From: Octopus sinensis
Lineage: Eukaryota
Reading direction: 5' to 3'
Assembly: GCF_006345805.1 (NCBI RefSeq)
Contig: NW_021831041.1
Span: 124,001-188,000 of the forward strand
Length of the DNA: 64,000 nt
Part shown: positions 4,327 through 61,860 of the stretch, piece after piece
Layout: the number at the start of each line of letters is the position of its first letter
Position numbering within the stretch: the first letter of the stretch is position 1
The notes under the pieces: model-generated
Databases searched by the model: none
Seen by the model: the letters and a program-made list of their open reading frames with translations, nothing else
Told to the model about the DNA's origin: nothing
Program-made: the position numbers and the translations under genes

Positions 4327-4888
4327 TCAGACCACCGGGATAGGACGTTCAGTGATTGTCAGTTTTTCCAGAGCAGCCTCGATTTGAACGTGATCAGAAG
4401 GCTCAGTTTTCTTCGGGACGGAATAAACGCGAACTAAACGATTGCTGATTTCTTCCTTAATCAGCCCTGAAACTTCAATCAGACATAACTGACCTTTTCT
4501 GTCCAACTCTCTGAGAACAGCGTTGGCAAGACTGACAGTAATCTTGTACTTTTCGCTCAGCATACTCGCAGTGATCATCTTCATTTTGGGGATTTCTTTT
4601 AGGAGTTTTTCGTAGGCGTCATTTGTGAACATGATTTTGCTGTCTAGTTTTTCCTTTTCTTTTTTTTTGTTCCATTTCTAGGGGTTGATTGGAAGGGATT
4701 ACTTTTTTTGTGGCCTTCGCGTTTTTTGAGGGGGGTTTGAGGGGAGCTTTAGTGGGGGCCTTGCCTTTCACGTTTTTTGCACCCTTCTGAACATTTCCAG
4801 GTTTGGCACCTTTTGCTGATTTGTCTGTTTTTTTAGTTTGTTTGTTCTGAATGAATGTAATATACAGCTATACAGTAGTAGGGGGCAT
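4327..4888 (-). CDS. RPS25: 40S ribosomal protein S25 (eS25), 3 introns (27, 25, 27 nt), with N- and C-terminal extensions
   Basis: ATG at 4888 (MPPTT), then KKKW-like KK|KWNKKK, AYEKLLKEIPKMKMITASMLSEKYKITVSLANAVLREL..K|GLIK. The frame is restored by three GT-AG micro-introns. Confidence 0.92.
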
Positions 4889-5339
4889 TGGACAATTCGG
4901 AAGTATATATTTATTTTATTTCCTAAAATATTAATTTAAAATTAATTAAATAATTAATTAATAAAAAAATAAAATTAATTTAAATTGTACTAATTTCTAT
5001 TTTTGATAGTTTTATGATGTTATTCTGTCTTTTAGGCCAACCATATGTGCTATAGATACCAATCGGACATTTTCGTACTTACAATTTATGACCGAAAATT
5101 AATGAAAATTATCAAGACTGAATTATCATTTAAAAAAATTAAAAAAGTAATGATTTACTAGGCGAGTAGGTACTGGTCTTTTAATAAGAAATTTTGACCG
5201 TATTCTAATTATTCTACTTTAGACAAAAATGCTGATCTAAATAACTGTTTGGTCTTTACTTTTCCTATTTTAAGATTATAAATACAACAGTTTGTCTCCG
5301 GACAGTAGGTAAGTGACCAAACGAACAGTTTGATTTGAA

Positions 5340-5560
5340 AATTTCTCATCTCTGTAAACTCTCTCAAATTCGCCAACTCTCGAATCTGCCATTTTTTAAA
5401 TAAAAATACAAATTTCTTAGGGAAATTCTCGAATCTGTCCATTTCTCGAATTCCCCACATTTACAAAAAATTAAATTTTTCATGTGTTCATAAAAAATAA
5501 TTTAAAAACCGATAAAAAACCCTCTCGAATCCGCCACATGTTGGTGGACAGGTTCTTTAA
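5340..5560. mobile_element. possible pogo/Tigger-type terminal remnant
   Basis: CTGTAAACTCTC followed by repeated CTCGAAT(C/T) motifs resembles pogo-family subterminal repeats. No partner end found. Confidence 0.3.
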
Positions 5561-5779
5561 CCACTGAATCTCCAGATTTGTAAAACCAATCTTAATGCCC
5601 AAACAAAGTGTGTTGTAAGTTTGGCAACAGGAATCTTCTTTCTATTTATAATAAAATGTTCAAATTTTAAATCAAATAACTCAGTCCATAGTTGTTAGCA
5701 TCAAGATTTACAATATATTGGCAATTTTAATACCTCTCAATAATTTATATTTTACACTAAGCTGAATTACAAATTATTA

Positions 5780-5985
5780 ACTACCCCTTTTGTCCCATTT
5801 ACCGGGCTGACGAGCACACAACTGCCCATCTATTCCGCTGTCCTGGTCTTCTTTCGCTCCGTATAAAATTTGCCATTCACTCTCCGGAGGTCCTATGTGA
5901 GCAACCTGGAAGAGCGCTGTTGTTTCTGCAAGCTGCAGGTCTCATAACTTAATGTGAGATCGGGTTATACAACAACAAATTATTA
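5780..5985 (+). mobile_element. 3' end of the I-group LINE family at 23381-26520, with (CAA)n tail
   Basis: Clear reverse-complement homology to 23380-23590 (GATCTCACATTA, CAGCTTGCAGAAACAACAGCGC). Ends GGGTTATACAACAACAAA. Confidence 0.85.
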
Positions 5986-10885: not shown

Positions 10886-12663
10886 ATGACCCAGTTAATG
10901 GAGCAAGTTCGCTGGTTTTACATAAAAAACGGTTCTTTCTTTAAATTTGGAAGCTATGATACAACTCGTCTTGAAAAAGAATACAGAAGTGGCAAGGAAT
11001 GGAAAGAAGTTACAGTTCGTCACGGAATTTTTGTGGTTAATTTACACGATCGGAGATGCTTTCCAATATACGATAGAGGCAAATACGATTTATTTACATT
11101 TGAAGAATCATGGTTTCAAGTTATCCGTGGAACTTGGTTTACCTATCCTAAATATGAGCCTATATCTGAATCGCTAGCTGAACAAATAGATTCCTATCAC
11201 AACGAGATGTCCGTCTCGACAAATAAAAGTATTTATTATCTCCCCAATCTTTAGAGCCACTAATGCTTGAAGAATATACAGTTAAGTGGAAATCAGAAAA
11301 TGAAATATTCCTTACAAAAAAATCGAAAACTTTATTATCATCAATATTTAATAACATTGGAATTTTTAGTTTATTTTGATAGAAATACATAATAGATACT
11401 TCATTTCAAATTGTACGAGGATATCGTAAAAATGCAAAAAAATTGAAAGAAGAAAAAGAAATTTCTCATCTTGTTTTTGTAGTTCCGGGGATTGCGCAGT
11501 CTTTGAACGAACGCAATTACATCGAAATATCTGAGAGGTTTATATTTTCATAGATTTATGTTTATAGCTTAAATAATGTAATACAACAGGAACTAAAAAA
11601 CCGTTATCCAAATAATAAAAACGCAGTAATTGAACTAATGCCAGTGAATTGGCGCACAGTCGAATTGGGAGAAAGTTTTTCTAATAAAATTTAATTTCCT
11701 TTTAGATATATTAGATGTTTTAATGCCATCTTCAAATATAAATGTCCGTAATTTTATTAACAACTCTGTTCTTGACATCCTATACTACACAAGTTCTTAT
11801 TTTAGAGCCAAAGTTGTCATTTTAATTTTTTGATATTCATAGATCATCGAGAAATTAACAACTGAATTATCACGATTGTATTCGCTTTTTGTCGAATACA
11901 GAAAAAACAAAAAAACAAATCTTCCAGATATATCAATTGTAGCTCATTCTCTAGGTATAATCAGTTGAAGTTTTTTTTAACTTTAGGCTCTCTGATCGTT
12001 TATGACCTCATTACGGAAGGGGATACCTGGATTTGTCCATCGATAAAAAATAATTTTTTCTTACCTTCAATTTTGGATCTCAAAATTAAAAACTTTTTTA
12101 TGCTTGGGTCGCCACTTTCCATGTTTTTGATGCTCCGAGGAAAATCGGTTCGTGATTCTTCAACACAAGAAGATATTCTACCCAAATATGGGATCCCCTA
12201 CCGTCTTTTTAACATTTTTTATCCAAGCGATTTCATCGTGAAATATTTTTAATTTAAAGTATTCATAGGCTTATCGGTTGGAACCTTTGTTTTGCCGAGC
12301 TTTCTGTAATATAAACCCTGTTATATTAAAAGAAGTGGTTACACAAAAAATAGTCATGAATATCATTCATCGAAATGTCATCAAACCTGATTGTATTTTT
12401 TACCGAGGTTGGAATGATCATCTGAACTCATATGAATTTGTTTCTCCATTCTATGATCATTTAAGAATTGAAGAAACCTCGCTTGTTCCGGAAGGTAATA
12501 AAATAAACTTCAAACTGTAGGACTCGAATTTCGTCTTGATTATGCTCTCAGTGAACAAAAATATAATTTTTCACGTTATTTGTTGTCACATGTGTATTAT
12601 TGGAATAGTGAAGAACTGGCTGCATTCATCCTAAAAGCTATAATTGATGGAATGGATATTTAG
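10886..12663 (+). CDS. DDHD1: DDHD1-type phosphatidic-acid-preferring phospholipase A1, 8-9 micro-introns (26-32 nt)
   Basis: VRWFY, VIRGTWF, IVRGY, HLVFVVPGIAQ, LMPVNWR, LDILYYTS, lipase motif IVAHSL|GS, FFMLGSPL, DFI|AYRLEPL, RLDYAL and SHVYYWNS. The frame is continuous after splicing. DDHD1 versus a paralogue is not fully resolved. Confidence 0.88.
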
Positions 12664-12775: not shown

Positions 12776-14217
12776 CAGTCCCGTCCAAATGTTAGAGGCA
12801 CCCTATTTTTTCCCTAAAAAAGGCACTTATTTGTCATTTTTTGAAAAAAGTTTTTTGTTAATAACAAACTATTGAATAAAAAATCTTAACCTAAAATTTT
12901 TGAGCACATTTAGTTTATAATGTGTATTTACTAAGAAACTCAAAATAATACATCGTTCATATGTTAGAAGCACATTTCAATAACGAAAGACAAAATTATC
13001 CAAAAATTTAATATTTAGTCATTCCTCCATTATTTATGACTACCGAAGATATTCTTCTTGGAATTGACTCAAAAAACTTAATAACCACACCTGTATCAAT
13101 GTTTTCCCAGGCCTTCTTTGTTTCATTCCATAATTCTTGAATCGTTGATGCTCCACATTTTTTAACTTCTTTTTTTAAAATTGCCCATAGATTTTCAATT
13201 ATATTTAAGTCAGGAGATTGACTTGGCCATTTTTCCATGAGTTTTATGTTGTTTTCGGCCATAAACGCTCTAGTGGATTTTGATGTATGACATGTTGCTC
13301 CATCTTGTTGAAGAAAATAATTTTCTTCATAAAAATTTTCAAATCCTTCTTTTATAACGCGTTGATATTCGGCGGAGTCGACTGTTTTTCGGCAAAGGAC
13401 AATTGATCTTTGCCCATTGCTTTTAATTGCTCCCCATATCGTAATTGATAAAGGGAATTTCACAGTTTCAATTGAATATTCTTTCTTTAATTTTGATCCA
13501 GGGGGTCTTCTTATGTATTGCCTAGACATCTGATTTAACTGAATCCGGCATTCATCAGAAAATATCACTAAATTCCAGTCGTCTTGATTCCACAGAATTT
13601 TAGTAAGACACCATGTATATCTTTTATCAACCTGAGATGCAGTCAATTTTGGTTTTTTCACTGCAATGCGTCCGAATAAATTGTTGCGTCTCAAAATTCG
13701 TTTAATTGTCGAAAGACTCACTTTTCCGGAAAAGTTACAGCATATAAGAAGATCGTTGGCGGTCATTTTTGGGTGTAATTTTGACATTCTGATAAGATAG
13801 CGTTCATCATTTTTGGTTAATTTTTTGTTCCTTCCCTTTTTTGGCATATCGTTATATAAATATCCGTATAAAAATCGCTTTTTAATTTTTTGAATGGCAC
13901 AACGAGAGATTCCCAAATCTTTGGATATTTTCACCTGAGATTCGCCACATTTTAATTTTTCGATGAATTTTTTATTAGAATTAACAATAATAAATTATAG
14001 AATTATTGCTTTTTACATAAGTGCCTCTAACATATGAGCGACCAATTATTTTTTGTTTTCAAGTTTGAGAATACTATCGGTCGAATATTTATAAAAACTT
14101 TGGAAATGTTTAATTTCCTTTAAAAACTTAATTTATTCTTTAAAATCTTTCGAAAAATAATAAATAAGTGCCTTTTTAGGAAAAAAATAGGGTGCCTCTA
14201 ACATTTGGACGGGAGTG
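12776..14217 (-). mobile_element. Tc1-family DNA transposon (DD34E), TA target duplication, IR/DR-type ends
   Basis: TA|CAGTCCCGTCCAAATGTTAGAGGCACC ... GGTGCCTCTAACATTTGGACGGGAGTG|TA. ORF 13008-13934 carries FSDE, QQDGATCH and SPDLNIIEN. Confidence 0.95.
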
Positions 14218-14372: not shown

Positions 14373-15942
14373 TGTCACAGTCCGAATAAAATACACGCCG
14401 AATAATTACATTCTTTAATTTTACTGAAATTAAAAATTTACACAACAAAATGTTTAATTATTGCTAAAAATATGATTTCTAATATAAAATTCATTATTTG
14501 TTTACTAATGTGTATAAACAAAATGAACCACAATCAACTGATTCAGTTAACATACGTTTGAATATTGTTATTTCATTTTAGATTATCCTAATAAATTTTT
14601 CAGATACAATTTATCGTTAATTTTTTATAATAAATTATTTTTCTTCTAGATTTAAAACAATCAATTTTAGCTAATCAAATAAATTCCATGTAACCGGTCC
14701 AGTCCTCCTTTTCGATAACATAAAAATCATTTGTTTGTTTGACAAGAATATGCTTATTAACATCAATTTCACTTTACAGTAAATACTGCCGAATATTAGC
14801 GTCGTTTTTCTGTTTAAAATTAATTTGACGCTTAAGAATATAAAAGCACACTAGTTCCAACATTCTTCATATCTCCATTTTCTTTTTTAAATCATTTTAT
14901 CGCCAGAAATAAATAAGTTTTCTAATGCACTTTCTCGTGCCTCTGATAATCCAGTTGAATCATAGGCTAAAAGTTGCTCCATTCCCCCTTCATCAATCCT
15001 TCCAGGATTTTCAACACCCATGAATATAAAAAGGGATTTTTTTGTCGAAGAATGAATGCTGTTATTGTAATCATACACGATGTCCTTTATGCATTCGCGA
15101 TATCGTCCAAAACAATTTTGAGAAGAACTTGCCGACGATATCCAGCGTTTTATGCTTTGATTAAATCTACAAATCGATTTTAAATCATTAACCTTTCGAC
15201 TTGCCCTTGTACCCAAGGAGCACGAGGCCTCCCACGTACATGTTTTATACCATATTTCGTACATAGAGCATCCATTTGCGAATTGCAAAATTCCCTTCCA
15301 TTATCAGTGTGTAGAATAAGCGGAGGCCCGACATAATAAAAAATTCTTTGGAATAAATCTGCGATTTCTTCAGAAGATTTGGTCACCGACAGTTCAAGCA
15401 TTACATATTTGGAAAAAGAATCCACAATTACCAAAATCTATTTATTAACATTAAATTCATACCCAGCTAAAGCCATCATTCAACGCCGAATATCTTCTGA
15501 GGTCAATTAAATCCGCAATGTATCTGTCCCTACATCTCCTTGCAATGATTGGCGTAATCGGAGGCTTCGTAGACAATAATTTTTTCGACTAAGAATATTT
15601 ACTAAAAGGAGTTATTACCTGACAGAAAGCACAATTCGAAATCACCTTAGAGATTTCTTCTCTATTCAATCCATAATAGAGATTTCTTAATTTCGAAAAA
15701 AGCCGGTCTCTCCCAAAGTGGTTATAGTTATGTTCCGCCTAAATTTTATTTATTAAGTTGGACCTCAACGCACTTAAGCTTTAATTCGATTTCATCTTCA
15801 CAGAAAAAACGCAATTTAAGCCCATTTTTTCGAAAAATAATAATCAATTATGATTTTTTCATACTAATTTTTAGATTTCGCTTTTTTCGCCATTTGTGAC
15901 AAGTGTAGATTATTCGGCGTGTATTTTATTCGGACTGTCACA
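14373..15942 (-). mobile_element. Ginger2/TDD-type DNA transposon (integrase-like DDE), 34-bp TIR starting TGT, 5-bp TSD AATTA
   Basis: TIR TGT(C/G)ACAGTCCGAATAAAATACACGCCGAATAAT at both ends, flanked by AATTA on both sides. Internal fragments HFGRDRLF...CAFC, VDSFSKY, LHTDNGREF and QGQVER. No LTRs or RT. Confidence 0.88.
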
Positions 15943-17041
15943 AATTAAAAATTTAATTTTCTTACATCATTTTTGGCAAAATTAGAATTATTTTTTTAAT
16001 TTTAAAATTATTTTTGGCTTCTAGAATTTAATTTTAAAGCAGAATTTAAAATTTGCTGGACAAAAAAAATTGGATTTGGACAAAAAAAATTGGATTTTCG
16101 TATAAATGAAGCGTAATTCAAAAATCCATTTATCTGATTTTACAAAAGGAGTAATAATTGGATATTACTCTTCAGGAAAAACAATTGAAAAGATATCTAA
16201 AATACTGAAAATTCCCAGATCGACCGTGGGATTTGTGACAAGAAAATTTTCCAAAGGTCGTATACTAAATTCGTTTGGATTACATGCCGAGTTGCAAAAC
16301 ACAAACCTCTTTTAACATCAAAAAACATCAAATCCAGATGGTTAATTGCGAAAAAGTTTTTAGCCATATCTGACGAAGAATGGAAGAAAGTCATCTTCTC
16401 CGATGAGTCATGTTTTGAGGTCTATATCAGCAAAATAAGGATCTATAACAGCAAAAAACGGTACTGCATATGAAAAGTCCAATATCGTACCTACTGTTGA
16501 GTATGGTGGAGGAAAGTTAATGGTTTGGGGATGTTTCTCATATGAAGGCGTTGGTAATCTTGTTATTATAAATGGAAAAATGAACAGTGCTTATTATTTA
16601 AACATTTTGTCAAATTATCTGGAGCAATCAGCTCTAAAAATTGGGTTAAATTCATGTATTTTTCAACAAGATAATGCTTCATGCCACAGTTCTCGAGTAG
16701 TTAAAGAATTTATATGCGATAGAAAATATAAAATTCTTGATTGGCCGTCTCAATCACCTGACCTTAATCCAATTGAGCATGTTTGGGCAATGATGAAGAG
16801 AAAATTATTGCAAAAACCGCCGAAAAACTTGAAGGATTTGGAGACAAAATTAGTTGTGATATGGGAGTCAATACTGAAAAAATACCTAGAAAATTTAGTT
16901 ATGTCAATGAAAAAAAGAAGTTTGGAAATTTATGAAGCACGTGGAGGGATTTTAACTTATTAAATTTTAATTTGTTTCATTAAAATAAAAAAATCCAATT
17001 TTTTTTGTCCGACAAATTTTAGATTCTGCTTTAAAATTAAA

Positions 17042-17267: not shown

Positions 17268-17345
17268 CAGTAAACTCTTGGTTCTTGACCATTTTTGGTT
17301 CTTGACCGAAATGTGACGGATTCGAGATGGTTTTTATCGAGTTTT
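17268..17345 (+). mobile_element. possible pogo-type terminal repeat remnant
   Basis: TA|CAGTAAACTC followed by a duplicated TTGGTTCTTGACC. No partner end found. Confidence 0.35.
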
Positions 17346-17429
17346 TAATTATTTTTGTATGAAGACATGAAAATTTTTTTATTTCGAAAAATCAGTGATT
17401 TTAGTCTTAAATCTGGATTGTTAAAACTA

Positions 17430-46614: not shown

Positions 46615-46689
46615 TATAATTAACTTAAATGGATGTTTCAATTTCTCAAACACCATGTTTAATAAAATTAATTATGTAAATTCTATCTT

Positions 46690-47144: not shown

Positions 47145-47314
47145 AAAAAATAATGAAGGTCAAACGTAGCAGATTTTCAGTTTTTTTTCTTTATTAGAAA
47201 CTGTGATTTTAGCAGAGGTAAATATTTTTTTACTATCAATTTTCAAAAAATATTCATTTTCTAATACTATTGACGCAACGAATAGTTTATAATATTGTTA
47301 GTAAATTACGTTTA

Positions 47315-47885: not shown

Positions 47886-49329
47886 TTACAAACGGGAATG
47901 TTTATCCCTTCGTTTCTTACAGTCCGGACATTTTGCCATTTTTTTACATTTCTTGGAAGAATGACGGTGCTTTTTACACCGAAAATGAGCCTCCTCTGCC
48001 TGTCCATTCCCAACCTCCTCAGACTTGTCCAAGTCCCGGAATATAAACTCCCCTCGCCTACAACACTCATACCCAGCCCAACTCATGTCGATGGTGCCTC
48101 TGATTCAATGCAAACTCATCTGAGAGGGCCAACATTTCCTTTTCCCGAGAAGCAAGGTCAAGTACATGGTTAGGCTCAGCCGTCCTGCCCCTCGACTCCC
48201 TCCACGCCCCCAACAACTTGCTTACTGACTGAGAAAAGTCGACGTGTATTCTCCGGTCATCAATTAGGACATTATCCATTTTAAAATAGGCATCCTCACA
48301 GGAGGAGACCTGCCTGTTTTACCCCTCAAATCATACATTCTCAAACTCCACAAAAGCATACTGCAATGACTTACCAGTCCCTTTCTCACGGATTATTTCA
48401 CACCTCACAAAAATTGAATAAAACAACTTTAGAATATTCCCGAAGCGTGAAAATATCACCTCCAAGTCTTCATCGCTGGTCAATGGGTTAAGCTTGCATA
48501 CAAACAAAATATTCTCAGCTGGTTTGACCTCAGGGGCTGGCAGATCTCCAACCTATGACTGAGTGAGTGGAATAACCATTGTGAGAATATTGGCATTCAT
48601 TTCCCCATCCCTGTCCTCATTTATCCTCTCTACCTCCTCCTTAGATATACAAGTATCCAATTCCTCGTCATATTTTATCCTCCCAGTCTCCACCTCAGCA
48701 GCCTCATTAGTCGTAGGAGAATTAGGCGGAAAAATCAGTCCAGGCGGCTCATCGAAGGGATCCTCTTCTACCCACGTATGCAGAATCCTCACATCCCTAT
48801 AAGGGGTTCCATCATCCCCAGTCATCGTGTCGTTCAGTTTGCTGAGGACATCGAAAGTCTCCTCACAGACTGACCCAAAAACAGTGTGCTTTCCGTCCAA
48901 TGAGTCCAGACTGTTGGCCAAGGTGATAAAAAACTGAGAGCCGTGCAGTTTCTGGCCGTTATTGACCATGGAGAGAAGACCTTGTCTTTTGTGGGTTATT
49001 TTGGGGGTTTGTTCGGCCTCAAAGTACTTTCCGTCATCTCCGTAGAGATATCTAGGGTAGTCTTTAGTCCTTACTTGAAGACTGATTCTCCTCCGTTTCC
49101 TGTGGCTGTGGGATCCCCAGTTTGAGCTATGAAATTTCGCTGTGGGGTTATTTTGAATGTTTACTTTTATGAAGTGAAATAGACAAAAGTTGTAATATTT
49201 CATTTTGCATAATTTTAGGAATTTAGACAACCTTATTTGAATAATTAATTTATAAATACAGCGAGGACGTTCGTCTGTGAACAGCAGTACTTTCAAATTA
49301 CCCACAGAAGTGTTTATTGTGACAGACAT
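47886..49329 (-). CDS. PPIL4: cyclophilin-RRM protein PPIL4, 7 micro-introns (28, 25, 23, 24, 24, 27, 25 nt); apparent 1-nt deletion in exon 2
   Basis: [56 protein letters not shown] and [19 protein letters not shown]. The last intron and C-terminus are tentative. Confidence 0.93.
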
Positions 49330-49539
49330 TGTATAACTTATTTAATGCACCACAAGAACAATGTGAGTTAAAAAATTTATTTAAATATTCTTTTAATTTT
49401 TCACATAATGTATATCTAGAAGAATCTCAGCCGTAGAGATCGAGTTGAATTTGTAAGACCATCCTTCACTCCTCGACTAGTGGGCGATAAATGTCTCTAA
49501 CAGATAAAGCTAAAGAGGCAGTTTGGTAAAATTCGAAAA

Positions 49540-49680
49540 TTTATTTTAGGAACATTGCGATCGTTATTTGAGTACTATTTGGACGAATTCACGTGGCGGA
49601 CCTCATTAGTTGATAAAGAGAAGATATTCCAAGAATTTCTGCTCCTAATAGTCAACAAATACGATTTTTCAGCTTAATTC
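49540..49680 (+). mobile_element. ISXO2/Merlin-like transposase C-terminal fragment
   Basis: YYLDEFTWR...IFQEFLLLI motif. Ends not resolved. Confidence 0.5.
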
Positions 49681-49688
49681 TTATTCTT

Positions 49689-49935
49689 TTTTTTTTTTTT
49701 AAACGTATTTAACTAACAATTAACACCGAAAATAGTTAAGTTCCAGCGGCGATGACGCAGTGTGCGTTGCCCCGAACAATGGCCAGGCCGATGCGCTGGC
49801 GGAACCAGAGGCTCTCTCTCGAGTCCTTGAGCCTTCTCCCGATGGACTGCCCGACCTCTTTGAGGAACGAGTCAGTCTCCTTTCCTGCAACTCCAGCGGT
49901 CTCCAGAGCGATTGCCGTAACGCGGTAGCGGTCGG
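49689..49935 (-). mobile_element. 5'-truncated CRE copy with poly(A) tail and 11-bp TSD TTCTTATTCTT
   Basis: TAIALET.GV.G...QRIGLAIVRGN, T-run at 49687-49700, TSD at 49678-49688 and 49936-49946. Confidence 0.88.
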
Positions 49936-50479
49936 TTCTTATTCTTAAAAAATATGACAATCCCATTAAAATCAAATTAAAAAATAATGAAAAAATAATT
50001 TAAGTTTATTGTTTATACGTCGAGATTTATACATTGACTAAAATTGTAGCTTACCGAAAGCTAAATTATTTTTTTATCGAATCTTTAGTGTAGTATCTCA
50101 ACTCATTTCTAAAAGTCAAAACCGCTGAGAGAGGAGATCTACGGCTTCGTCTTACAAACATATAGTCAAATTTAGAAGAACTTGTTTCTAAATTCATAAA
50201 ACATCATTGTTCTCATTGATTGTTGTTATAAATAAATTTTTTTTTCTTTTTGTTTCCATGTACTTCTTCATGGTGGGCAATATTGCTAAAAAGTTTGTTA
50301 AATTGTGCGACAAGAAAAAATTTGGGAAACACTGCCCTAAGAAGTCTGTCGGTTTTTCCGTGTGTCGCAATATAAGGGGAATGGGGTTGAATAAATAAGT
50401 AAATGAATAAAATTAAAATTTGATTTTAAGATTTTTTGACCATAAAAATTTCAAACATCCTAAACGTGCATGGAATAAA

Positions 50480-50947
50480 TAGAAAATCAAGAAAGTCTTG
50501 TCCTTCTGCAAAAAAATGAAACCACCACAAATTATCTAACAGTTGATAAAAAACAAAATTCAATATTATTTAAAAAAACCGGAAGATTTTTATTATCCCC
50601 TCAATGTCCATATTTAATAAATATTTGTATATATTTGATGAAAATGAAACAAAAGTTATATCAAGAATAAACGTTTTGAAAATAATTAATGGTCTAAATA
50701 AACTTACTTGAAAATGGTTTCAGATAGCTTGATCCCTCCACTATGTGATATTTGGACTTATTCAGGCAAAAGTAACTTTATTCGCAAACTCCCTTGACTT
50801 TGATGATTTCAAGCATCCAATGGGTGGCTTGAAGTCACACTACTTCATTAAAGCCTACTCCATTTGGTGTGAAAAAAACAGAAGTTGATTCAGCTGTTGT
50901 TGACCATTGGATTACACAAGTTTCTTCTATTGTGGAAGAGTATGAGT
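50480..50947 (+). CDS. uncharacterised micro-intron gene candidate
   Basis: Open segments (..LLSPQCPYLINI|FISRINVLKIIN|DSLIPPLCDIWTYSGK ... PTPFGVKKTEVDSAVVDHWITQVSSIVEEYE*) can be joined by 29- and 32-nt introns. The start and one junction are unresolved. Confidence 0.35.
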
Positions 50948-50992
50948 GATTCTTACAACAATAGAAACTCCCAATATATCAATAAAAAATGA

Positions 50993-51861
50993 TTATTTAT
51001 CAAAAAACATTAAAATGGCATCCTCAATATTACCACAAATAGCTCCAAGTCGTTCCATATCCCAATCAAGCAGAGCAGACGAACCAACAAGTTGAAAATC
51101 ACATATTTTATGTTCATTAAATATGACAATAACCACCCCCTCAGCATTTCTCTCATCCTCAGCAGAAGGGTCACTCAAAAACTTGCCTTCGTACAACGAA
51201 AATGTCCAAACCATTGGAAATGACCCACGTGTGACACATTTAATGTAAGGTTGACACACTAAACCATTCAAATTAATCCATCTGTAAAATACAGTTTTTT
51301 AAAGAGGCTAAAAAAGCAAGAAAAGCAGCACTGAGCACATTTCCGTTATCACTGATAACCAGAATGGAACATTCGAGAGAATATGCAGTCTACAAACTCA
51401 AAAAACACAAAGACAAGCCTTCCCAGTCTCCAAACAGAGGTCCTTCGGGTCAAGAATATCAAGACTATTCAAATATTAAACACTAAAACTGAGATAGAAG
51501 GGAATTTAGTTTATCTTGGAGGATTTTATCCCTGACCAAATTGGGGGACAGCGGAGAGGTGACGGACAAGGCTAGAAAGTGAGTTTATTGGCATACATAT
51601 GTGGCCTGAATCAGGAGAGGATATTTCTGGCTTCCCTACAGTCTTTGAGATGTGGGAACTCTCAAAAAACCATTTTCAATCCAGAAATGACCTTTGTTTC
51701 GCCTATAGAGACAGAGCTTGAGCCATCGGTTGTTTCTGAAAAGTCGCCTGATGAAATGTAAATTGGTCGGTGTTGGTCAAAGTCACGACCATCTGGTCGA
51801 ATATTGCTTTCCTGCGAAATTAAGGACCTTGGCTAACAAAATAGTCGGAATAGTGCCACAT
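50993..51861 (-). CDS. EXOSC8: RNA exosome core subunit RRP43, 6 introns (26, 28, 25, 25, 29 GC-AG, 34 nt)
   Basis: ESNIRPDGRDF, DGSSSVSIGETKVISGLK, DLCLETGK|TAYSLECSILVISDNGN..A..ASLKN and LSDPSAEDE; RNase PH fold. RRP43 is preferred over RRP42/45 on motif similarity. Confidence 0.82.
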
Positions 51862-52073
51862 GAATCAACGTGGTTATTAATATTTATTTAAAATAATTTT
51901 ACAAAAATTAATATTTTGTAATTTAATTAATAAATTATAAAATTAATAACCATTTTATTGTGTGATTAAAAATACTAAATTATCTGTCTAGTCTTTGTAA
52001 GCTGTCAGAAAATGCCGAAGTCTTTGAAATTAAATTAAAAATGATTAAATTTATTAATAATTTAGTGACAAAT

Positions 52074-52308
52074 CTAATATATTTTAGAGAGTAGGTGGAG
52101 AAGGAGAACAAAAACGATGACAAAGACGGCAAAAAACATAACATGAGGTGGTCCACTAGAATAGATTAAATAAACCAACATTTGAAATAATGTTGAATCC
52201 GAAGATTGTAGTTGCCACATTGCCTGGCTTGATGCTCCCTTTCTTGAGGCAGTAGGTCTAGAATTTGATCTATTTGTGAGGATAAAATAGTTACCGTGAG
52301 GTCCCCAT
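52074..52308 (-). CDS. SEC61B: Sec61 translocon beta subunit, 61 aa, 2 introns (25, 24 nt)
   Basis: MGTSR|SNSRPTASRKGASSQAMWQLQSSDSTLFQ|IGPPHVMFFAVFVIVFVLLLHLLSKIY parallels the Sec61-beta pattern MW.F..DS..L.VGP..V...LH..K. Confidence 0.85.
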
Positions 52309-52650
52309 TATAAGAACAACAAGAAAATATAAAGTTAAAAATACGTGTACATTTATTGAAATTATAAATAATCATTAAAAAATAACTTAAATAATTTATT
52401 TAAAAAATTCAAATATTTTTATTTTTACTCTGAGACTTCCATTTTTGATCTCCTTGAGTCAAAATTAGTAAAATGTACTTTTCGGATAATTATGTTTTGT
52501 GCTGATTAGACCAATTGAACAGCAGATCGATTTGCTGTAACTGAAATTACAAACTAAATTCGCGTGTAATCAACAATCGTTAATATGACATTACGCATAT
52601 CGTAGCAACAAATTTAAATACTTTATTGAGGTTAACCCGTCCTTAGCCTG

Positions 52651-55458
52651 ATGTGGAGTCCTTTCAACCAGCCCATTTCTGCAAAGGATCTGCAGAAGGT
52701 GCTCAATAATTACATTCATGTCGACCGTCCGCCAACCAACAAAGTTGATTTATCACGTTTATTGTGATTTATTACTCAAATAGCTGCACCAAATACTCCT
52801 AAAAATCCATTTCTTAAGTCATGTGACATTCGTTCTGTGAAAATTCCCAGCGTCTATGCACAGGATGAAAGTAGAGAGGAATACAAACAGAGGACATCCG
52901 CCTCGTCTCTGAGAGAATATTCCAAAACCCCGACCACACGACTTTACAAATCAGTCTCTCTGAACGTCGTCGGTTTTTAAAACTAAATATTTTTTAAGAT
53001 TCGTTTGATTTGAAAAATTCGACCAAAAATATTCAAAAAAACACCAAAAGTTGGATTCCGATAATTTTTAGAAAACTTGAAAAAAGATTTTAACGGACAT
53101 TCGTTTTGTCTTCTCAACCAAAAAAGGGAATTCCAACTCAGGTCGTCCTTATTTTCGATTCCCTCCGCCTCCCGGAAAAAGATGTCTTTGGAACTTCCAG
53201 AAAAAATCAAAAATGTCGATTTTCTCTCCAAACCGAACGGCGTGATCATCGAAACTAACAATTTTGTAAAACAGAGACCCAGCAGCTCGTGTGCCCTCAA
53301 TAAAGTAGACGTCGTTTGCGAAAACAACGTTTCACTTGCAGAGAAATTGCCTCAAAGTCCAAAAATATTTAAGGAAAGTCACCAAAAAGTCGATTTTGAA
53401 ACAACTGAAACCACAAAAAATATCCAACAGAAATCTCCAGAAATTGAACAAGTCGAAAACGACTCAAATTGTGAAACAGAAGAAATTTTAAACGAACAAA
53501 TTTTCGAATCTGTTCACCACAGTGACCGCGACTCTGTCTCAAGTTTACAAACTTTTTTATTTGTAAGCGGAGACCAGTTTCACTCCATTTTGTGTGGATA
53601 AACTTCACAGAAATACAAATGTAAATATTTCTGCTGATTTACCAGTCTTCCGTGGTTTATCCCAAACCACAGGTCCGCCTCAACACTCCCGAAAAAGTGA
53701 GTTCGTTGACGGACAGTCTCTTTTTGAATGTCCCTCCAACAATAAACTTTGTTTCGTGTGGTTTTCGCGGTAAGTGAGTCAGTTTATTCAAAGTTCCGCG
53801 TTTGCCGCCACACCTTCAAAAGATGCTGAAATGGAAGTTGGATTCGTTGACTCCAAATGTTGTTAAATCTGTCATTTTGCGCTCAAATTTTCACTTTTCT
53901 AAAAGTTTTTGTGTTTCTGGAGTTTTCAGACTGCAAAGAGTGGATTGGCTATTTTGGAAAGCAGTTGAAGCCGTCGGAGTATCGGTCATTAGAAAAATAT
54001 CAAAAAGTTTTATTTTTAATTTATCAAGTCGAATCATTTTCCCGGGGCTTTTTTTCTCGGAAGAAAAGACCACTTGGCAAGAAATTTGAAAAAAATGATG
54101 TCAAATTTCGAGGAAAATGAATTTGATTTTTTCCCCAAAACATATTCCCTGCCCAAAGACTACGAAATTCTTTTACTCGACAAAAAAATAAACTCAAAAT
54201 GGATTCTGAAACCTGTAAACTAAAATTCACTAACCCAGCCCGCGTCGGCACGTGGCATCGGAATCAGAGTGGTGCAGGGAATCCAAACTTTATCCAAAAG
54301 CAGTTCGGTCATGGTACAAAGGTTTAATCAAAAAAATATTTCAGATACATTTCGAACCCGTTTCTAATAAATGGACGTAAACAAGACCTAAGAATATACG
54401 TCTATGTCTCCTCTTTCAACCCACTTCGGATTTATGTGCACAAATCAGGACTCGTTCGATTCGCATCGGAAAAGTCATTTTGTTTAATGATTTAAGATAT
54501 TCTCAAAACGACATAAAAAATCGTTATATTCACCTCACAAACTATTCCGTGAACAAAACAAATTCAAATTACCGACCATCGAAGGGAAACAACGGAGAAA
54601 CTTCATTTGACATGAATGCGGACAAGTGGAGTCTCACTCAATTTTGGACTTACATCTCAAACTACATTGACCCAGAACTGATAAAACGTAAAATATACGA
54701 CATTGTAGTCAAAACCGTCATCAGGTTTGAATACTGTCATTACTGCAGTGCGGAAAGCTCAATCAACACCGCAATCCGCAGTTCGGGGGTTTCGAGGTAT
54801 TCGATTCACGAGCTCTACGGATTTGACATTCTCCTCGATTCCCAATTGAAGCCTTGGCTGCTTGAAGTCAACGTTTCCCCGAGGTTGGTTGAGATAATAA
54901 ACACAGTCTCCACACGTCCTCTCGACTGGACGTGGAATTGAAGGATCCACTTATCCGGGACATGTTCAACGTTGCAGGGTGGATGATCCCCACTTCTACT
55001 TCCAAGTCCTCGAAAGAGTAAGTGGGGTTTCCTTACTTTAGAACAACTCCATGGAACTTTGACGAAAGACTGTTTTGTGCAAATTTGTCGAGTATTGAGC
55101 GAAACAAACACACCGAATACATCAAACTGTGGAAAGAGACCAAAGTATCTCTGATTTTAATTATGCAGAAAACAAATGGAATTTTATCTAGTTTGACTCC
55201 TGATGATGTCAGAATTCTGATCCAAGGGGAAGATGAACTTAATCGCGTGGGTGATTTTGAACGTATTTTTCCTGTCAAAAATTCGATGAAATATTTGAGG
55301 TTTTTTGAACAGTCGCCAGGGTACTATAATTTGTTGTCGAACGCATGGGAGGAGTATTTGGTGGATAATTTTAGAGTTAAAAGTAATGATTTACATTTGT
55401 TGTAGAATTATCGGTTTTGAATAAGTTTTGTGCAGATAAATATCATCTTCGAAAATGA
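52651..55458 (+). CDS. TTLL4: tubulin glutamylase TTLL4, 16 introns of 22-27 nt
   Basis: SLFLNVPPTI, LKWK...TPNVVK, NHFPG..GRKD, WILKP|PASARGIGI, DLRIYV, GLVRFAS, HLTNYSVNK, ELYGFDILLD and LEVNVSPS. The frame is continuous after splicing; the start codon is tentative. Confidence 0.92.
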
Positions 55459-56140
55459 TAATAAAAATGAATTAAACTTATTAAGAATTGATTGTGATAA
55501 AAATAATATTATTTATTTAAATAAATAGACTTTAAATCTAATCTCCTACTAGCTGAACATGTCATTTTTACTTGCAGTTATGCTTGACCATATTTCACTC
55601 AGGCTGAAATGAGACTAGTACGGGGCTAGCCGTGGGTAGTGGTGGTCTCGGCTTTACGGAATGACGTTAAACCAATAATTTATAATCTTACCGAGCGAAA
55701 ATTTGTTATTTATTTTAATTATTGATTATAACACGCACCCCATCTATTGGGATTAATTATATAGCATGTTATAATCGAGAAAATACGGTAATTGATACTT
55801 TTCTAAAGTCAAAATCGATTTTTAAACAGCCACCTCTTCAAGACGCTATAATTAACACTCGAGATTTCAAGATAAACTTTTCTCCTTTAAATACAAGTTA
55901 AGGAGGAATCAAACCCCGTTAGTTACACAAGTACTAACAATATATCGATAGTACTTTCTAAAAACATATCGATTTAAAGTTAAGTATAATCCTGGCAATA
56001 CTAATCAACCGGCATTGTATAAATATTAGCTTTATAAGCTCATAATTAGCTTATTCAGAATATGTAGCAGCGATTGCGTCAGTGCACGAAACAGCGCATT
56101 GAAAGTAGAATTAATTGAAATTATATCGGTTTATTTACAT

Positions 56141-56929
56141 ATGATTAGGATTAACTCCGAAACTGTAATCCTGTCGGGAGTTTTGGAGAACTGTGAACCG
56201 TTTTATATAAAGGATATGGACTTGACGTCATGTGATGACAACATGGCCCAAGAAAAAGCCTCAAACGGCAATATTAGAAAAAGAAGTTCGTCTAGTGACG
56301 ACATTTTTGGCCTAAATGAAAGAAATTACAATTACATGTGCAAAAAACTGTACAAATCTAAACATTTCCAAATCAAAGCAAGTTCAGCCGACTTTGATGT
56401 ACCCAAAAAACCAGTAAAGCCGAAAAAAAGAGTCAGTTTTGACTCTCCGATTTTTGTAAAGCTTTACTACAATACAACGGACTATCCGTTCTCCCAGTCC
56501 AGCCACACTCAGATTCCAAAAAACAATCCAATCACATATTCTCAGCTGAAATTATGTTTTCCGTTACCAATGTCGAATTTCCTGCTTTTTAAACAACTTC
56601 TTGACAAAAATAAAGTCTGTCTTGAAGAGATTGTGACTGCAAACAAAACAGTCGAAGGGATTGTGAAGGTCTGCAACCTTGTTTATGAGAAACACGTGGC
56701 AGTCCGTGTGACATTCAACAACTGGAAAGACTATAAAGATATTAAATGCTACTATACAAGATCAGGCACGATTCGACAGTCGAGCAAATACGACAATTTC
56801 CAGTTTACTTTGGGGATTCCTGCATATACGACAACTGAATTTTGTATTTTTGCTCGAATGGGTGGTTCGACTTATTGGGACAACAATCAATCAAAAAATT
56901 ATCGTATTTTGCCTATAAATCAGCACTAA
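56141..56929 (+). CDS. glycogen-targeting PP1 regulatory subunit (PPP1R3 family, CBM21), intronless
   Basis: RVxF motif KKRVSF, then VCLE, G.VKVCNL.YEK.V.VR.TFNNW, EFCI and YWDNNQSKNY. The specific paralogue was not assigned. Confidence 0.9.
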   Translation: MIRINSETVILSGVLENCEPFYIKDMDLTSCDDNMAQEKASNGNIRKRSSSSDDIFGLNERNYNYMCKKLYKSKHFQIKASSADFDVPKKPVKPKKRVSFDSPIFVKLYYNTTDYPFSQSSHTQIPKNNPITYSQLKLCFPLPMSNFLLFKQLLDKNKVCLEEIVTANKTVEGIVKVCNLVYEKHVAVRVTFNNWKDYKDIKCYYTRSGTIRQSSKYDNFQFTLGIPAYTTTEFCIFARMGGSTYWDNNQSKNYRILPINQH

Positions 56930-57887
56930 CTATTTTTCAAAATATGTTGAATCGTTAAATTTATCTTGCTTTTGTTATTTTACTGTTATCAAGTTGCTAA
57001 GTAAATCCTGACATGTTCTCAAGATAGTGATACGTTTTGGTTAGGTGTCTTATTGGGCACAACAGCAATTTACTGAATAATACAGAAATTATTTATATCA
57101 TTAAATGGATTAAAATATTTGATTTGTCGATATTCCACCATTTGTTTAACAAGAATTAGAATTATTAGATGGTGCAATCAAATATCAACCACTATTGGAC
57201 TAAATTGACGAAACATTCACAAATTCTTTCATAAACATGCATTATATATATCCTCTATTTATTTGCCGAACAAAATAGAGCAAAAAAAAGAGGAGGTAAT
57301 AAAAGGGGGTTTGCCATTTTTTGTTTTCGACGGATTTATTTGTCAAAATAAGGAAAATAAGTCTTTATTTGAAAACATTTTTAGGAACAACAGTTAGATA
57401 ATCTAATAATGTTTTTTCTTTTTCTACTTTCCTTGTTTAGTATGTTTTCAAAACAGTTTTTTTCAGTAAAAAAGAAGAGTGGCAAATCATATAGGTTTGA
57501 CGTACATATATAACCCTTAAGTATACTTTAATATCAAACACAAATGAGTGCTGAAAGCTCCAATTGAGGGTCATTTGGACGACTTTCAAAAGGAAACAGA
57601 CAGTATTAAAGTGCATATATTGGTTGGTTTAAATGATTTTTGATTGAAATAATCAATAAAGTTGAATTGGTATAATTTTTTAAAAATTTTGAATTTTTTG
57701 GCATGACGTTGATAGAGAAAACATTTAATGACCTCATTTTCAATTTACAGTGCGTCAATAATAATTAATCAAACTTACATGTATTGAATTTTTTTGAGTT
57801 ATTAAAAGTTCATATAAACATTAACTATTATATTTAGAACATAAATTTTAATTTATTTAAATATTTGTAATAAATTATTTAAACATT

Positions 57888-58587
57888 ATGTTGCTCACTA
57901 TTTCTCGACGTTGGCTTGGATCAAAAGCAATTCAAAAAATCAAAAGTAATCAAAATTGACAAAATTAAAAAATTAGATTTAAAACCGATCAATCCTCTGG
58001 AAACAACCGACTACTTTAAAGTCGCCGAACGAGTAAAAACATCAGATATAGTCAAAAATCGAGTCCATTTAGGCCACGATAGTCGCATGAGAAACAAAGC
58101 CAACGAATGGTTTATATTTGGCGAGTGTTGTGGCCTGGATATAATCGACGCCAACATTACACGCTCATTCTTGATTGACTCACTAAACATTGTGTCCCAC
58201 ATTGCCAGTCTCGGTGGAATTATCCTCTTCTTTTGCGAAAATCGGTCAGCAGTCCATTTGGTCGAAGAAATGGCCAAAAAATGTGGGGAATTCGCCCACT
58301 GTCGAGATTGGCAAGAAAACACGTTTTCAGACCCAAAAAACACGTTTAGCTCAGAATATGTTCGACTTCCGGATTTGTGTGTGTTCTTGGCTTTGTCTGA
58401 GCCCATTCCTCACAAGGCGATCAGAGAATGTGCACGTTGTATGATCCCCACGGTGGGAGTAGTCGACACGGACACGGATGCCTCCTATCTTACTTATTCC
58501 ATCCCAGGGAATGACGACTCTGTTGAGTCAGTTCAGTATTTTTGTGATTTGTTTGGTGATTGTATTGCACATGCAAAGGGAAAATGA
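57888..58587 (+). CDS. MRPS2: mitochondrial ribosomal protein S2 (uS2m), one 31-nt intron
   Basis: Presequence-like MLLTISRRWLGS, then VHLGH, LDIID, GGIILF, RLPDL and IPTVGVVDTD...TYSIPGNDDS. Confidence 0.92.
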
Positions 58588-59099
58588 TTATAAATTTTTT
58601 TTGATCTATATTTGTTTAATAAATTATCATAAACTGATTTTTGAAAGATTTAGGATGGAAAGATTCTTGGAATAAATGGGACTCTAAAAAGGGCTAATCT
58701 GAAAATTATGCCTATGTGAGAAGACATGTGAATATTACTGTATACCAACTAAAAGGAGAATATGAACATAAATATGGGAAATCTCCCTGCAGTTATTTGG
58801 AATGTATGTATAAATATTTGTATTCACAAATCCAATGTTTTGGACAATAAAAAAGGCTGAAATTATTGCGTAACATTTTGTATATATTAATTTCAGTTAT
58901 AAGTTGTTAATTATATTAATGAATCGAAGGGCTGATGCTTTACTGGGCGATCGAGAAAGAGTTCTAGCGTACTATCGCGAGGGATATCCGCTCAAAGAAC
59001 CACTTCGATTTGCGAACGTCGCCTGTAAGTGTTGATATCCGAGAACAAAGCTACATTTTGTATAACTTTTGAATAAAAATGATACTTCAAACGTGGAAA

Positions 59100-60120
59100 C
59101 ATTTGACAAATCACAAAAAAATCTGAATCTATCAATCACTACTAAGAAAACTAACTTGGCAATCAAAAAATTAAACAACAGCGCGACTGTTTTTACAAAG
59201 ATTTTCAATATGGTATTTGACACCTTCTCAACTTGGTGATAGAATTTTAATTTTTTTGCATAAACTAGAAAAGAACAAGAGATTGCTAAAAAATCCAAGA
59301 CCAGTGATATTATTGCGAATATTGAGATAGATACTATTTCTGATAACCCTTAGTCGGGTATCTTTTGATTTTTATGATTTCTTGTCACCTGGACAGAATA
59401 AATTCAGAGGATCAATGCCGATGGAAATTATATATGAAGATGACATAGACGTGGTGTCAGAAAAGGATCTTGAACTTGTTTTTGAAAAAATTTCAAACGA
59501 ATATAAGAATTGGTTCTTGCACGTTAATAAAGAAAAAACTGAACAAATAAAAATCACAAAGGAACTAGAATGTATTGATAAAAACTGAAGGAAAATGGAA
59601 AATTGGGATTTTTAATTGGCGATAGTGAGGACATAATGTACAGAAGAGTCCTGACCATTGCAATGTATAAGAAAATGCAAAATATGGAGCCAACCGAAAC
59701 TAATCAAAAAAACCTACAAGTGAGACTATGCAACTCATATATAAAGCCGGTACTCATGTACTATTCAGATACATAAAGATTTAGAGTTAGAAGTCAAAAA
59801 ATGGACATATTTTATCGAAATCTATTCCGCATTTTACTAGGCCTAGATTGGCCAATAAAGATTTCAAAACAATCGTCTTTATGACACAATCGGTTCCAAT
59901 AAGCACCGAAATGATCGAATCAAAATGGAGGCTATTTGGACATGTATATAAAATGGACAATTATTTTAATAATAAAAAAAATTGTTCAGACATAGAATTA
60001 TCCTCCCTGTTGCATCAAACAAAAATTTTAATGAAATTTGAAAAAAAACTTAAATTTGCGGACGACCTAAAAGAACTACGAGCAGACATTTGGTGAATAG
60101 AATTAGAAACGTGTGGCACA
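59100..60120 (+). mobile_element. RTE-clade LINE fragment
   Basis: IIYEDD, WFLHVNKEKTE, KLGFLIGDSED and WRLFGHV. Confidence 0.8.
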
Positions 60121-60341
60121 AACGGAACTTTAGTTAATTTACATTCTATATTTCTGTAAACGTACGTTTAATAATTATTCGCAGGTTGATTTTTTTGCCA
60201 CTTTTTAGGAATTCATTGTGATAGTCTACAGTCAAAGGTGGCCTTTGAATTTTTAATTCCTCTGTTTTGGAATGAAAACTAAATATAAAATTTTATTTTT
60301 TTACTTATAATTATTTTAAAAATAAATTTAATTATGATATA

Positions 60342-61860
60342 ATGTGTGAATCTGGCTCCTTGGTATCCTATGAGTATATTTGCAATAAAATTGACGAAAT
60401 TTGCTTAAAAACAAATCCTAGTCTCGAAAATGACCAACTTGAAGTAAAAAAAAGTTAACAAATAATTTAGAATTTGTTGGACGACATTTACAAAATGAGG
60501 GACCACTATTTAATCACCAACGGAATTGACTCTGCCCCCAAAAAACAGTCGGACATAGCCACCGTCCAGACAAAATTCCAAAAAATATTATCAAAATTGG
60601 GTAGAAATATTAAAAATTCACATTTTAAAGAAAATAACCCACAAATTGACTATTTATGGGGCCGGTCGTACAATCTGACTCCCGAATATAACTCAAACGC
60701 AGAAAAATATTTAATCCGTTCCGTAAAAATGTTGTCTCTGAGAATCGAAGCCTGGAACGAGTTGGGAGAGTGCTACTGGCGTAAGGGGGACATTGAAAGT
60801 GCCATCAATTGCTTTACCAGTGCCAATCAACGAGGAAATAACAAACGGGCCTTTCGCTCACTTTCCGTGCTTCACCGCCAAGGAAAGTCCCTTTCTCCAA
60901 AAGACGTAGAAAAGGGACTTGAAATGGCCAAGGAAGCCCTCAAATTGGACTTTGAGGACCCACTCTCTTGGGGTACCCCATTTTCTTATAAATAATAGAA
61001 ATTGTCGGCAATGCTTATTTTGCCATGTTTTTTGTGGCGGGAAAACAAATTTCTTACCTAAAATCGGCACTGTCAGCCTATAAAAGAGCGGGAAAGGATG
61101 AAATTGGGGCCTTCAGTTCGAGTCTTCATTACAACCAGGGAATTGTAGACTTTTTGTGTCATTATGAGCAGTTAAACCTTTTTGAGGAGAACTACCAGTG
61201 TGCCTTGTCCTCACTCCGTCGTGTGTGCCAACTAGAACCTGAATGGACTGAGCCCGCCAAATTTATTACAAATATTATCGACTTTTTAAAAAAAATTGAC
61301 AATCTTACAAAAAACAAAGTTAAAGTTATTAATTAATGTCGAAGGGACATTTAAGTCGAAACCGACTCAAGTCAATGACGGGGAACATCTCTGACCAATG
61401 TCCTTATGATATGAAACTAAAAAACGTGATTTTAAAGTGGTTAACCTGCAGGTTCTTGTCACGGAATTGACGGAAGGTGTAAACGACCAATTATTTGTGT
61501 CAGGAAAAGTGGTTTATTCGCTGTCCCAAGTGGAGTCCCTTCCATTGTTGGTTTGTTGGTCGACTTTAGTGCTTTTGGAATGTGTGACAAGTCGGGGACA
61601 TGTGTCTGTGTGACTGTCTACAATATGTTGGCAGGACAGGGGGTCAAGATTGGGGACCTTGTTTCAATTCCTGAACCGTTTTTTACATTGCATGACTTTT
61701 TTGAGGCAGAACAAGTGAGAAATGATTTATTTATTTGTAGAGGTTTTCCTTTGGGTCTATTCGGGTCAGTTCTCCGGCAATTTTGGCTGTGAATGGGCGA
61801 AGATTTTCTAAGGAAAAGTGCCAGTTGTTATCGACCGAGTCCATGGTCATTCCTGACTGA
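60342..61860 (+). CDS. TTC5: tetratricopeptide repeat protein 5 (TTC5/Strap), about 8 introns (23-30 nt)
   Basis: DIYKMRDHY, GRSYNLTPEY..AEKYL..SVK, EAWNELGECYW, SW|.IVGNAYF..FF, LHYNQG, L.PEW, GKVVYS, VTVYN, V.IGD.V.IPEP and SIRV..P..L.VNG. Confidence 0.92.

Follow-up and report, generated by a model that had tools for sequence, protein, structure and literature searches.

Introduction

In the dicyemid Dicyema, comparison of genomic and cDNA sequences has revealed introns of 26.2 +/- 1.9 nt at evolutionarily conserved positions (Aruga 2007, PMC2222250), and these data were extended to 40 genes by Ogino 2010, as cited in PMC6543705. Dicyemid introns have a median length of 27 bp, with two thirds of them shorter than 30 bp (Zverkov 2019, PMC6543705). 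With a GC content of 36.7%, the genome of Dicyema japonicum consists to 48.9% of repeats, among which LINE elements are abundant, and its introns average 38 bp (Lu 2019, PMC6736024); the animals were collected from Octopus sinensis, and parasite and host cells were not fully separable by its authors. A comparison of D. japonicum with myxobolid myxozoans described such shortening as a convergent trait, with the splicing motifs reduced to GTa and AG accompanied by weak A residues, and the recognition of these micro-introns as still unexplained (Hadjez 2026, PMC13644364). Here, we describe micro-introns in the genes TTLL4, DDHD1, PPIL4, TTC5 and RPS25 on a 64,000-nt stretch of DNA deposited as Octopus sinensis, which we refer to as the window (VCDQ01006889.1:124001-188000, assembly GCA_006345805.1).

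Several described systems resemble the introns of the window. Myxobolid introns share with them a median of 22-27 bp, GTa and AG ends, a weak run of A residues, conserved positions and a parasitic animal as the carrier (PMC13644364), but myxobolids are cnidarians with fish and annelid hosts and relatively few transposons, whereas the window comes from an octopus sample, shows lophotrochozoan affinity and is transposon-rich. Ciliates, with introns of 20-35 bp in Paramecium (cited in PMC2222250) and 15-16 bp in Stentor (cited in PMC13644364), likewise have GT..AG introns that measure about 25 nt and approach the physical minimum, the lengths in the window being less uniform than those of Stentor. 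The introns of the Bigelowiella natans nucleomorph (18-21 bp, cited in PMC2222250) display a similarly extreme and uniform shortening in a reduced genome; however, they belong to a nucleomorph and span a much tighter range of 4 nt, whereas the window belongs to an animal nuclear genome with many transposons. The orthonectid Intoshia linei is, like the probable source of the window, a simplified spiralian parasite with shortened introns, but their median is 57 bp (PMC6543705) and most exceed 30 bp, compared with 32 of 38 below 30 nt in the window.

The closest likeness is to the dicyemids themselves, from which the window shows no essential difference: its introns agree with theirs in length, narrow range, ancestral positions, GTa and AG motifs and weak A residues, and the host is again Octopus sinensis. 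What the window adds is the octopus-labelled deposit and length classes that differ between neighbouring genes. Its micro-introns fall inside the published description of dicyemids and are in this sense already known, since 2007.

Results

Micro-introns in five genes

Introns were mapped with our own protein-to-genome spliced aligner, for which homologues obtained from database searches served as guides. The resulting catalogue contains 38 introns in five genes (15 in TTLL4, 8 in DDHD1, 6 each in PPIL4 and TTC5, and 3 in RPS25; Table 1), all of which start with GT and end with AG. Their lengths span 22-38 nt with a median of 25 nt; 37 of the 38 measure 22-32 nt, and none is shorter than 22 nt. 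Homology supports 31 of them. Once the introns are removed, the alignments are collinear across the junctions with homologues of TTLL4, DDHD1, PPIL4 and TTC5, and no spliced model contains a stop codon under genetic code table 1.

When sea-urchin, Capitella and coral sequences guided the alignment and lengths of 15-100 nt were allowed, the TTL core of TTLL4 was split by ten GT..AG segments, each of 22-25 nt. DDHD1 was guided by a profile of 10 orthologues and by the Lingula orthologue, and PPIL4 by a profile of 8 orthologues and by the Owenia orthologue. For TTC5, the aligned human sequence of 6t59 was used as the guide, and an in-frame 9-aa insertion is visible relative to it. The spliced 160-aa model of RPS25 matches Pfam PF03297 Ribosomal_S25 (3.2e-26), its residues 43-130 corresponding to profile positions 12-99 with no insertion.

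We then compared the boundaries with controls. When gaps of 15-60 nt could open at free boundaries, the aligner placed gaps of 22-25 nt in TTLL4 (plus spurious ones of 15 and 17 nt) and of 28-33 nt in DDHD1, with alignment scores of 852 and 328, respectively. Requiring GT..AG retained 98% of this score for TTLL4 (840) and 96% for DDHD1 (315). The best of 15 control dinucleotide pairs gave 770 and 283, and the scores fell to 327 and 139 when introns were forbidden. Among the controls were pairs that occur two to four times as often, CT..AC as the reverse complement, and TA..TA, which represents ciliate-type internal eliminated sequences and scored 689 against 840 for TTLL4 and 242 against 315 for DDHD1.

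Naive longest-ORF (open reading frame) chaining across GT..AG segments of 15-60 nt was also tried, but it chains nearly any sequence, transposons and antisense strands included; it was dropped as evidence and kept for drafts. Because such chaining yields long spliced ORFs everywhere, restoration of an ORF alone is no evidence of an intron, and we treat introns outside conserved regions as provisional.

The original prediction had described about 64 introns in 12 genes, all of 22-35 nt, with 16 of 22-27 nt in TTLL4 alone. That micro-introns occur where it had placed them is confirmed far beyond chance by the homology-guided alignments and the dinucleotide controls. Its totals were reproduced only in part, as we recovered 38-39 introns in five genes and one candidate in an exosome gene. 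For TTLL4, the catalogue has 15 introns of 22-27 nt. The length histogram of the catalogued introns is narrow in the five mapped genes.

Positions shared with introns of other phyla

To place the introns in an evolutionary context, the exon structures of the orthologues in Capitella, Lingula, Owenia and the coral Desmophyllum were worked out at the respective genomic loci, and intron positions were compared in guide coordinates. Among the 24 testable introns, 18-19 coincide in both position and phase with annelid, brachiopod or coral introns. In TTLL4, seven of nine match Capitella exactly in codon and phase, with one more off by one codon, and eight of ten match Desmophyllum exactly, with the other two within 1-3 codons; all ten core introns have a counterpart in Capitella and/or Desmophyllum. 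In DDHD1, five introns match Lingula introns of 242-892 nt exactly in position and phase, and a sixth is displaced by one codon. Four PPIL4 introns agree exactly in position and phase with Owenia introns that measure 419-541 nt, or five with the inclusion of a GT..AG first intron that we read by hand and that lies at the Owenia first-intron site (position 23, phase 1). The binomial p values of positional coincidence were 2e-14, 2e-9 and 2e-10.

Across the orthologues, the counterpart introns measure 49-3341 nt. Since position and phase are shared with these longer introns, the segments are best read as ancestral spliceosomal introns that were miniaturised, not as novel insertions. From the alignments and the conserved positions we infer that they are very probably U2-type GT-AG spliceosomal introns of animal ancestry, shrunken in a co-assembled dicyemid genome.

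Splice signals and length pattern

Outside the GT and AG dinucleotides, the information content does not exceed 0.54 bit at any position. After GT, the +3 position is occupied by A in 16 introns and by T in 18 of the 38, with no other 5' position above 0.4 bit, and the exons end in a triplet rich in A (24, 26 and 18 of 38). The acceptors are TAG (18), CAG (12), AAG (7) and GAG (1). Intron interiors contain 43% T and 25% G+C, compared with 28% T and 39% G+C in coding sequence, while an excess of pyrimidines is confined to -3, -5 and -6 (p 0.004-0.01). The motifs TRAY, YTRAY and CTRAY showed no enrichment over shuffled interiors (p >= 0.06), and neither TAAY nor CTAAC reached significance; for ACTAA, enrichment had a nominal p of 0.02, with no correction over the 10 motifs.

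Phases 0, 1 and 2 are represented by 12, 10 and 9 introns, respectively. Lengths divisible by three were found in 14 of 31 introns with no visible depletion, which differs from Paramecium, where introns of such lengths are described as depleted. Five of these 14 are also free of stops in frame (54725-54748, 55145-55168, 61145-61171, 48404-48427 and 4467-4493), and their retention would add 8-9 residues with no premature stop.

Furthermore, intron length depends on the gene. TTLL4 introns average 24.1 nt (n = 15, 22-27 nt) and DDHD1 introns 29.1 nt (n = 8, 26-32 nt; Mann-Whitney p = 3e-4), and the difference extends over the five genes (Kruskal-Wallis p = 7e-4). Because the range differs between genes, the narrow overall range probably does not correspond to one measured length. 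Clustering of short introns with short neighbours has been reported for a myxozoan (PMC13644364).

Source of the contig

A comparison of the unspliced PPIL4 ORF with a representative protein library returned the 305-aa RefSeq protein XP_029654447.1 at 99% identity. This protein is encoded on VCDQ01006889.1, a contig of 300,011 bp, and its locus is base-for-base the same as window positions 45331-52329. Annotated as 'PPIL4 [Octopus sinensis]' (window 48553-49329, minus strand), it reads through the 25-nt and 23-nt introns and therefore carries 38 wrong residues in place of the 22 of the spliced reading; the frame survives because the two introns together restore it. Within 10 kb on either side of PPIL4 (window 38331-59329), the annotation comprises only PPIL4 itself and a 176-aa kinase, and the TTLL4, exosome subunit, CBM21 and MRPS2 genes in this region have no annotated NCBI product.

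The proteins of the window are distant from their best database matches, those of molluscs included, with identities of 45-48% for TTLL4, about 30% for DDHD1 and 46-49% for PPIL4. A search of protein collections with TTLL4 found nothing above 48% identity, the RPS25 model had zero matches in them at E <= 1e-5, and an exact look-up of a 788-aa retrotransposon ORF in the same collections found none. The top named matches of DDHD1 are nemerteans, molluscs and the brachiopod Lingula, a named cnidarian first appearing at about rank 55, and those of PPIL4 are a mussel and an annelid. The overall composition of the window is 36.1% G+C, consisting of an AT-rich background of about 30-36% (host about 33%) and G+C-richer islands. 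Both this value and the transposon load resemble the D. japonicum genome (36.7% GC, 49% repeats). A search of the 64-kb window with Rfam at gathering thresholds revealed no ribosomal RNA (rRNA), small nuclear RNA (snRNA) or other structured RNA.

It is very unlikely that the contig is octopus DNA, because its predicted proteins reach only 30-49% identity with any animal protein, molluscs included, and its introns measure 22-32 nt. The original prediction had listed the acceptors TAG, CAG, AAG and GAG, all of which occur here, and had seen no consistent branch point or polypyrimidine tract, in line with the minimal splice signals, in which no canonical branch motif is significantly enriched over shuffles. 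It had also proposed a dicyemid as the source. A dicyemid parasite whose DNA was co-assembled with that of its host Octopus sinensis is well supported as the source, though indirectly, by the O. sinensis origin of the assembly, the host of D. japonicum, the lophotrochozoan matches of DDHD1 and PPIL4, and the resemblance in GC and repeats. In the literature searched, we found no report of this contamination.

Other genes and repeats of the window

The coordinates of the genes and main repeats are collected in Table 1. In two further genes, the aligned conserved parts are free of introns. Residues 3-188 of TP53RK align with residues 40-229 of human TP53RK (7sza_A) with gaps of 1-4 residues (2.5e-41), and NCBI annotates a 176-aa Pkinase product at this locus. 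Similarly, residues 37-234 of MRPS2 align with 54-252 of bovine MRPS2 (3jd5_B) with gaps of 1-2 residues (4e-44). Intron density thus differs among genes, since the conserved parts of MRPS2 and TP53RK have no intron-sized insertion. The exosome subunit is represented by a de novo chain (51544-51817) that matches PDB chains of RRP42/RRP43 with E-values of 8e-11 to 3e-8. For the C2H2 zinc-finger gene, provisional candidate introns of 22 and 27 nt come from a de novo chain only. A de novo finder based on codon usage and position weight matrices (codon/PWM model) identified no further high-scoring host genes over the window beyond the exosome subunit.

Table 1. Features of the 64,000-nt window, with intron coordinates and lengths (nt) in brackets.
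Feature	Position	Strand	Introns and remarks
RPS25	4327-4888	-	3 introns: 4847-4873 (27), 4678-4702 (25), 4467-4493 (27, in frame, stop-free)
DDHD1-type phospholipase	10904-12660	+	8 introns, 26-32 nt: 11229-11254 (26, second solution possible), 11369-11395 (27), 11538-11567 (30), 11675-11705 (31), 11813-11842 (30), 11955-11986 (32), 12238-12268 (31), 12495-12520 (26, ORF restoration only)
Tc1/mariner-type DDE_3 transposase	13011-13994	-	
Integrase core fragment	15183-15437	-	
Tc1/mariner-type DDE_3 transposase	16439-16960	+	
Reverse-transcriptase fragment	18977-19399	+	
C2H2 zinc-finger gene	22471-23155	-	Pfam zf-C2H2 and zf-H2C2_2 on ORF 22471-22821
92-bp satellite	34465-35807		14.5 copies, 93% identity
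TP53RK/Bud32 kinase	38196-38822	-	Main exon intron-free
Retrotransposon ORF, endonuclease and reverse transcriptase	41716-44211	-	832 aa
Pogo-like DDE_1	45773-46207	+	
PPIL4	48058-49329	-	7 introns, 23-28 nt, 6 catalogued (23-27) and 1 read by hand: 49232-49259 (28, by hand), 49140-49164 (25), 49052-49074 (23), 48553-48576 (24), 48404-48427 (24, GAG acceptor), 48310-48336 (27), 48058-48082 (25, ORF only)
Exosome RNase-PH subunit (RRP43/RRP42-like), partial model	51017-51817	-	One 28-nt candidate intron
TTLL4	52651-55348	+	15 introns, 22-27 nt; best matches animal TTLL4, 45-48% identity. N-terminal (ORF restoration and codon/PWM model): 52757-52783 (27), 52973-52998 (26), 53050-53071 (22), 53543-53567 (25), 53621-53645 (25). 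Introns 6-15: 53770-53793 (24), 53905-53929 (25), 54007-54028 (22), 54215-54238 (24), 54322-54344 (23), 54474-54496 (23), 54725-54748 (24), 54884-54906 (23), 55018-55041 (24), 55145-55168 (24)
PPP1R3-like gene	56030-56926	+	Pfam PF03370 CBM_21 (CBM21 glycogen-binding domain), 9.3e-26; one long ORF
Mitochondrial uS2m (MRPS2)	57883-58584	+	Pfam Ribosomal_S2, 4e-31; conserved part intron-free
TTC5	60444-61693	+	6 introns: 60444-60470 (27, ORF only), 60973-60998 (26), 61145-61171 (27, in frame, stop-free), 61319-61344 (26), 61400-61437 (38) or 61426-61451 (26), 61547-61569 (23); PDB match human TTC5 (6t59_TT), 1.2e-52

The host genes are interspersed among transposons, several of which lie within islands of 42-51% G+C. 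One of the DDE_3 transposases is a stop-free ORF of 328 aa. Transposon-bearing stretches cover positions 1-4200, 13011-13994, 15183-15437, 16439-16960, 17300-20000, 41716-45400 and 45773-46207. In the first G+C-rich island, the ORFs 1190-2536 and 2850-3887 (minus strand) gave zero Pfam matches.

The 92-bp satellite can be read on its minus strand as a repeated open peptide (NYNVLDLHDEVLKTFPPKK...) and is followed by an (ACAG)n microsatellite at 35831-35885. Two further ORFs, 32719-33288 (plus strand) and 46869-47159 (minus strand), are related to each other through the common motif KFHKYDLLA...K(V/I)KI(V/I)..V(I/L)TW(N/D)G(I/V)VSKFFK and have no Pfam matches. Both probably belong to an unclassified family of repeats.

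Discussion

The introns described here are consistent with a simple course of events. Ancestral GT-AG introns would have been reduced in a dicyemid genome to 22-32 nt, close to the physical minimum, through deletion-biased shrinkage down to a floor that leaves just enough room for the 5' splice site, the branch site and the 3' splice site on one RNA. They may be removed by a conventional spliceosome via intron definition. The branch point would probably be the weakly enriched A located 9-10 nt upstream of the AG, after which the next AG would be used. The sharp floor at 22 nt together with the gene-dependent upper spread suggests that a steric limit fits better than a measured length.

Several points weigh against this account. 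Seven of the 38 introns come from ORF restoration or the codon/PWM model only. A few boundaries are ambiguous: one TTC5 intron measures 38 or 26 nt (the 26-nt alternative, 61426-61451, stems from the de novo model), another TTC5 intron 26 or 20 nt, and one TTLL4 intron 24 or 36 nt. The hand-read 28-nt intron of PPIL4 restores the conserved CCLNFLKLCK only if AAATTCC (49218-49224) is taken as AAATTTCC, with one T fewer. This discrepancy in exon 2 is probably a 1-nt homopolymer assembly error, the alternative being a real frameshift. Enrichment of A at -9 and -10 is weak (p 0.07 and 0.03, uncorrected), and so is the assignment of the branch point. Rules by which the 'first AG' or the 'nearest GT' would set the intron ends had to be rejected as evidence, as about 80% of short, T-rich, AG-poor introns would fit them by chance (a rough estimate). 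Finally, the window contains no rRNA or other direct taxonomic marker, which makes its assignment to a species indirect, and searches of the protein collections did not recover the source organism's own transcripts or spliced proteins.

We weighed three other explanations. According to the first, which takes up the original prediction, a reduced spliceosome would dispense with classical recognition of branch point and polypyrimidine tract and define the introns by a fixed length measured from the 5' splice site. The only gene of the window that bears on spliceosome content is an intact PPIL4. The undetectable canonical branch motif and polypyrimidine tract and the sharp lower bound of 22 nt would agree with it, as would the distribution of AG dinucleotides: in 34-35 of 38 introns the acceptor is the first AG that follows GT by at least 19-22 nt, and of the 24 internal AGs, 20 are no more than 18 nt away from the donor. 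In addition, the distance between the weak A residues and the AG is reported to grow with intron length, suggesting 5' anchoring (PMC13644364). However, lengths vary between TTLL4 (22-27 nt) and DDHD1 (26-32 nt), the first-AG rule performs at about chance for T-rich 25-mers, and the pyrimidines at -3, -5 and -6 suggest residual recognition of the 3' splice site. The convergent myxozoans moreover keep the branch-binding region of U2 snRNA as well as U2AF1/2 (PMC13644364). Taken together, we regard a spliceosome of this kind as improbable.

A related mechanism would anchor the 3' site to the 5' splice site by placing the branch A at a roughly fixed distance from GT and using the first AG beyond about 19-22 nt, with little or no recognition of the U2AF/SF1 type. 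The length classes of the genes (about 24 nt in TTLL4 and about 29 nt in DDHD1) would then arise from a gene- or region-specific process, for example deletion pressure linked to expression. We consider this mechanism, too, to be doubtful.

The contig could also come from a micro-intron organism other than a dicyemid, the candidates being myxobolid myxozoans, ciliates, microsporidians and other parasites of the octopus. The ciliates with micro-introns reassign stop codons. The spliced ORFs of the window are open under the standard code, which argues against ciliates that reassign TAA and TAG. Myxobolids match the window in their median introns of 22-27 bp and in the same reduced motifs, and the missing rRNA or direct marker and the missing database entries for the window's own proteins leave room for such a source, but myxobolids alternate between annelids and fish (PMC13644364), whereas this sample is from an octopus. 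Furthermore, the top named matches of DDHD1 and PPIL4 are lophotrochozoan with cnidarians lower, and the window is transposon-rich like D. japonicum (49% repeats), whereas myxozoans are described as relatively transposon-poor. A source of this kind is therefore highly improbable, and a dicyemid remains the preferred one.

The last explanation would hold that the segments are not introns at all but assembly indels, pseudogene debris or DNA removed from the somatic genome. Dicyemids are reported to eliminate DNA and to form circular DNA. 'Circular' contigs are described in PMC6543705 and the window probably contains at least one 1-nt assembly indel, in exon 2 of PPIL4, but the explanation can be set aside almost completely, given that GT..AG bounds all 38 segments while TA..TA and 14 other pairs score lower, that 18-19 of the 24 testable segments match spliceosomal introns of other phyla in position as well as phase, and that the genomic/cDNA comparison of Dicyema shows such segments to be spliced (PMC2222250).

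Dicyemids and, convergently, myxobolid myxozoans have the shortest animal introns, and their mode of recognition is open (PMC13644364). The window adds clean, position-conserved examples to this question, together with a hint that the floor is common and the spread gene-specific. Octopus-labelled dicyemid contigs could mislead cephalopod comparative genomics; at the same time, such contigs could double as free dicyemid genome sequence.

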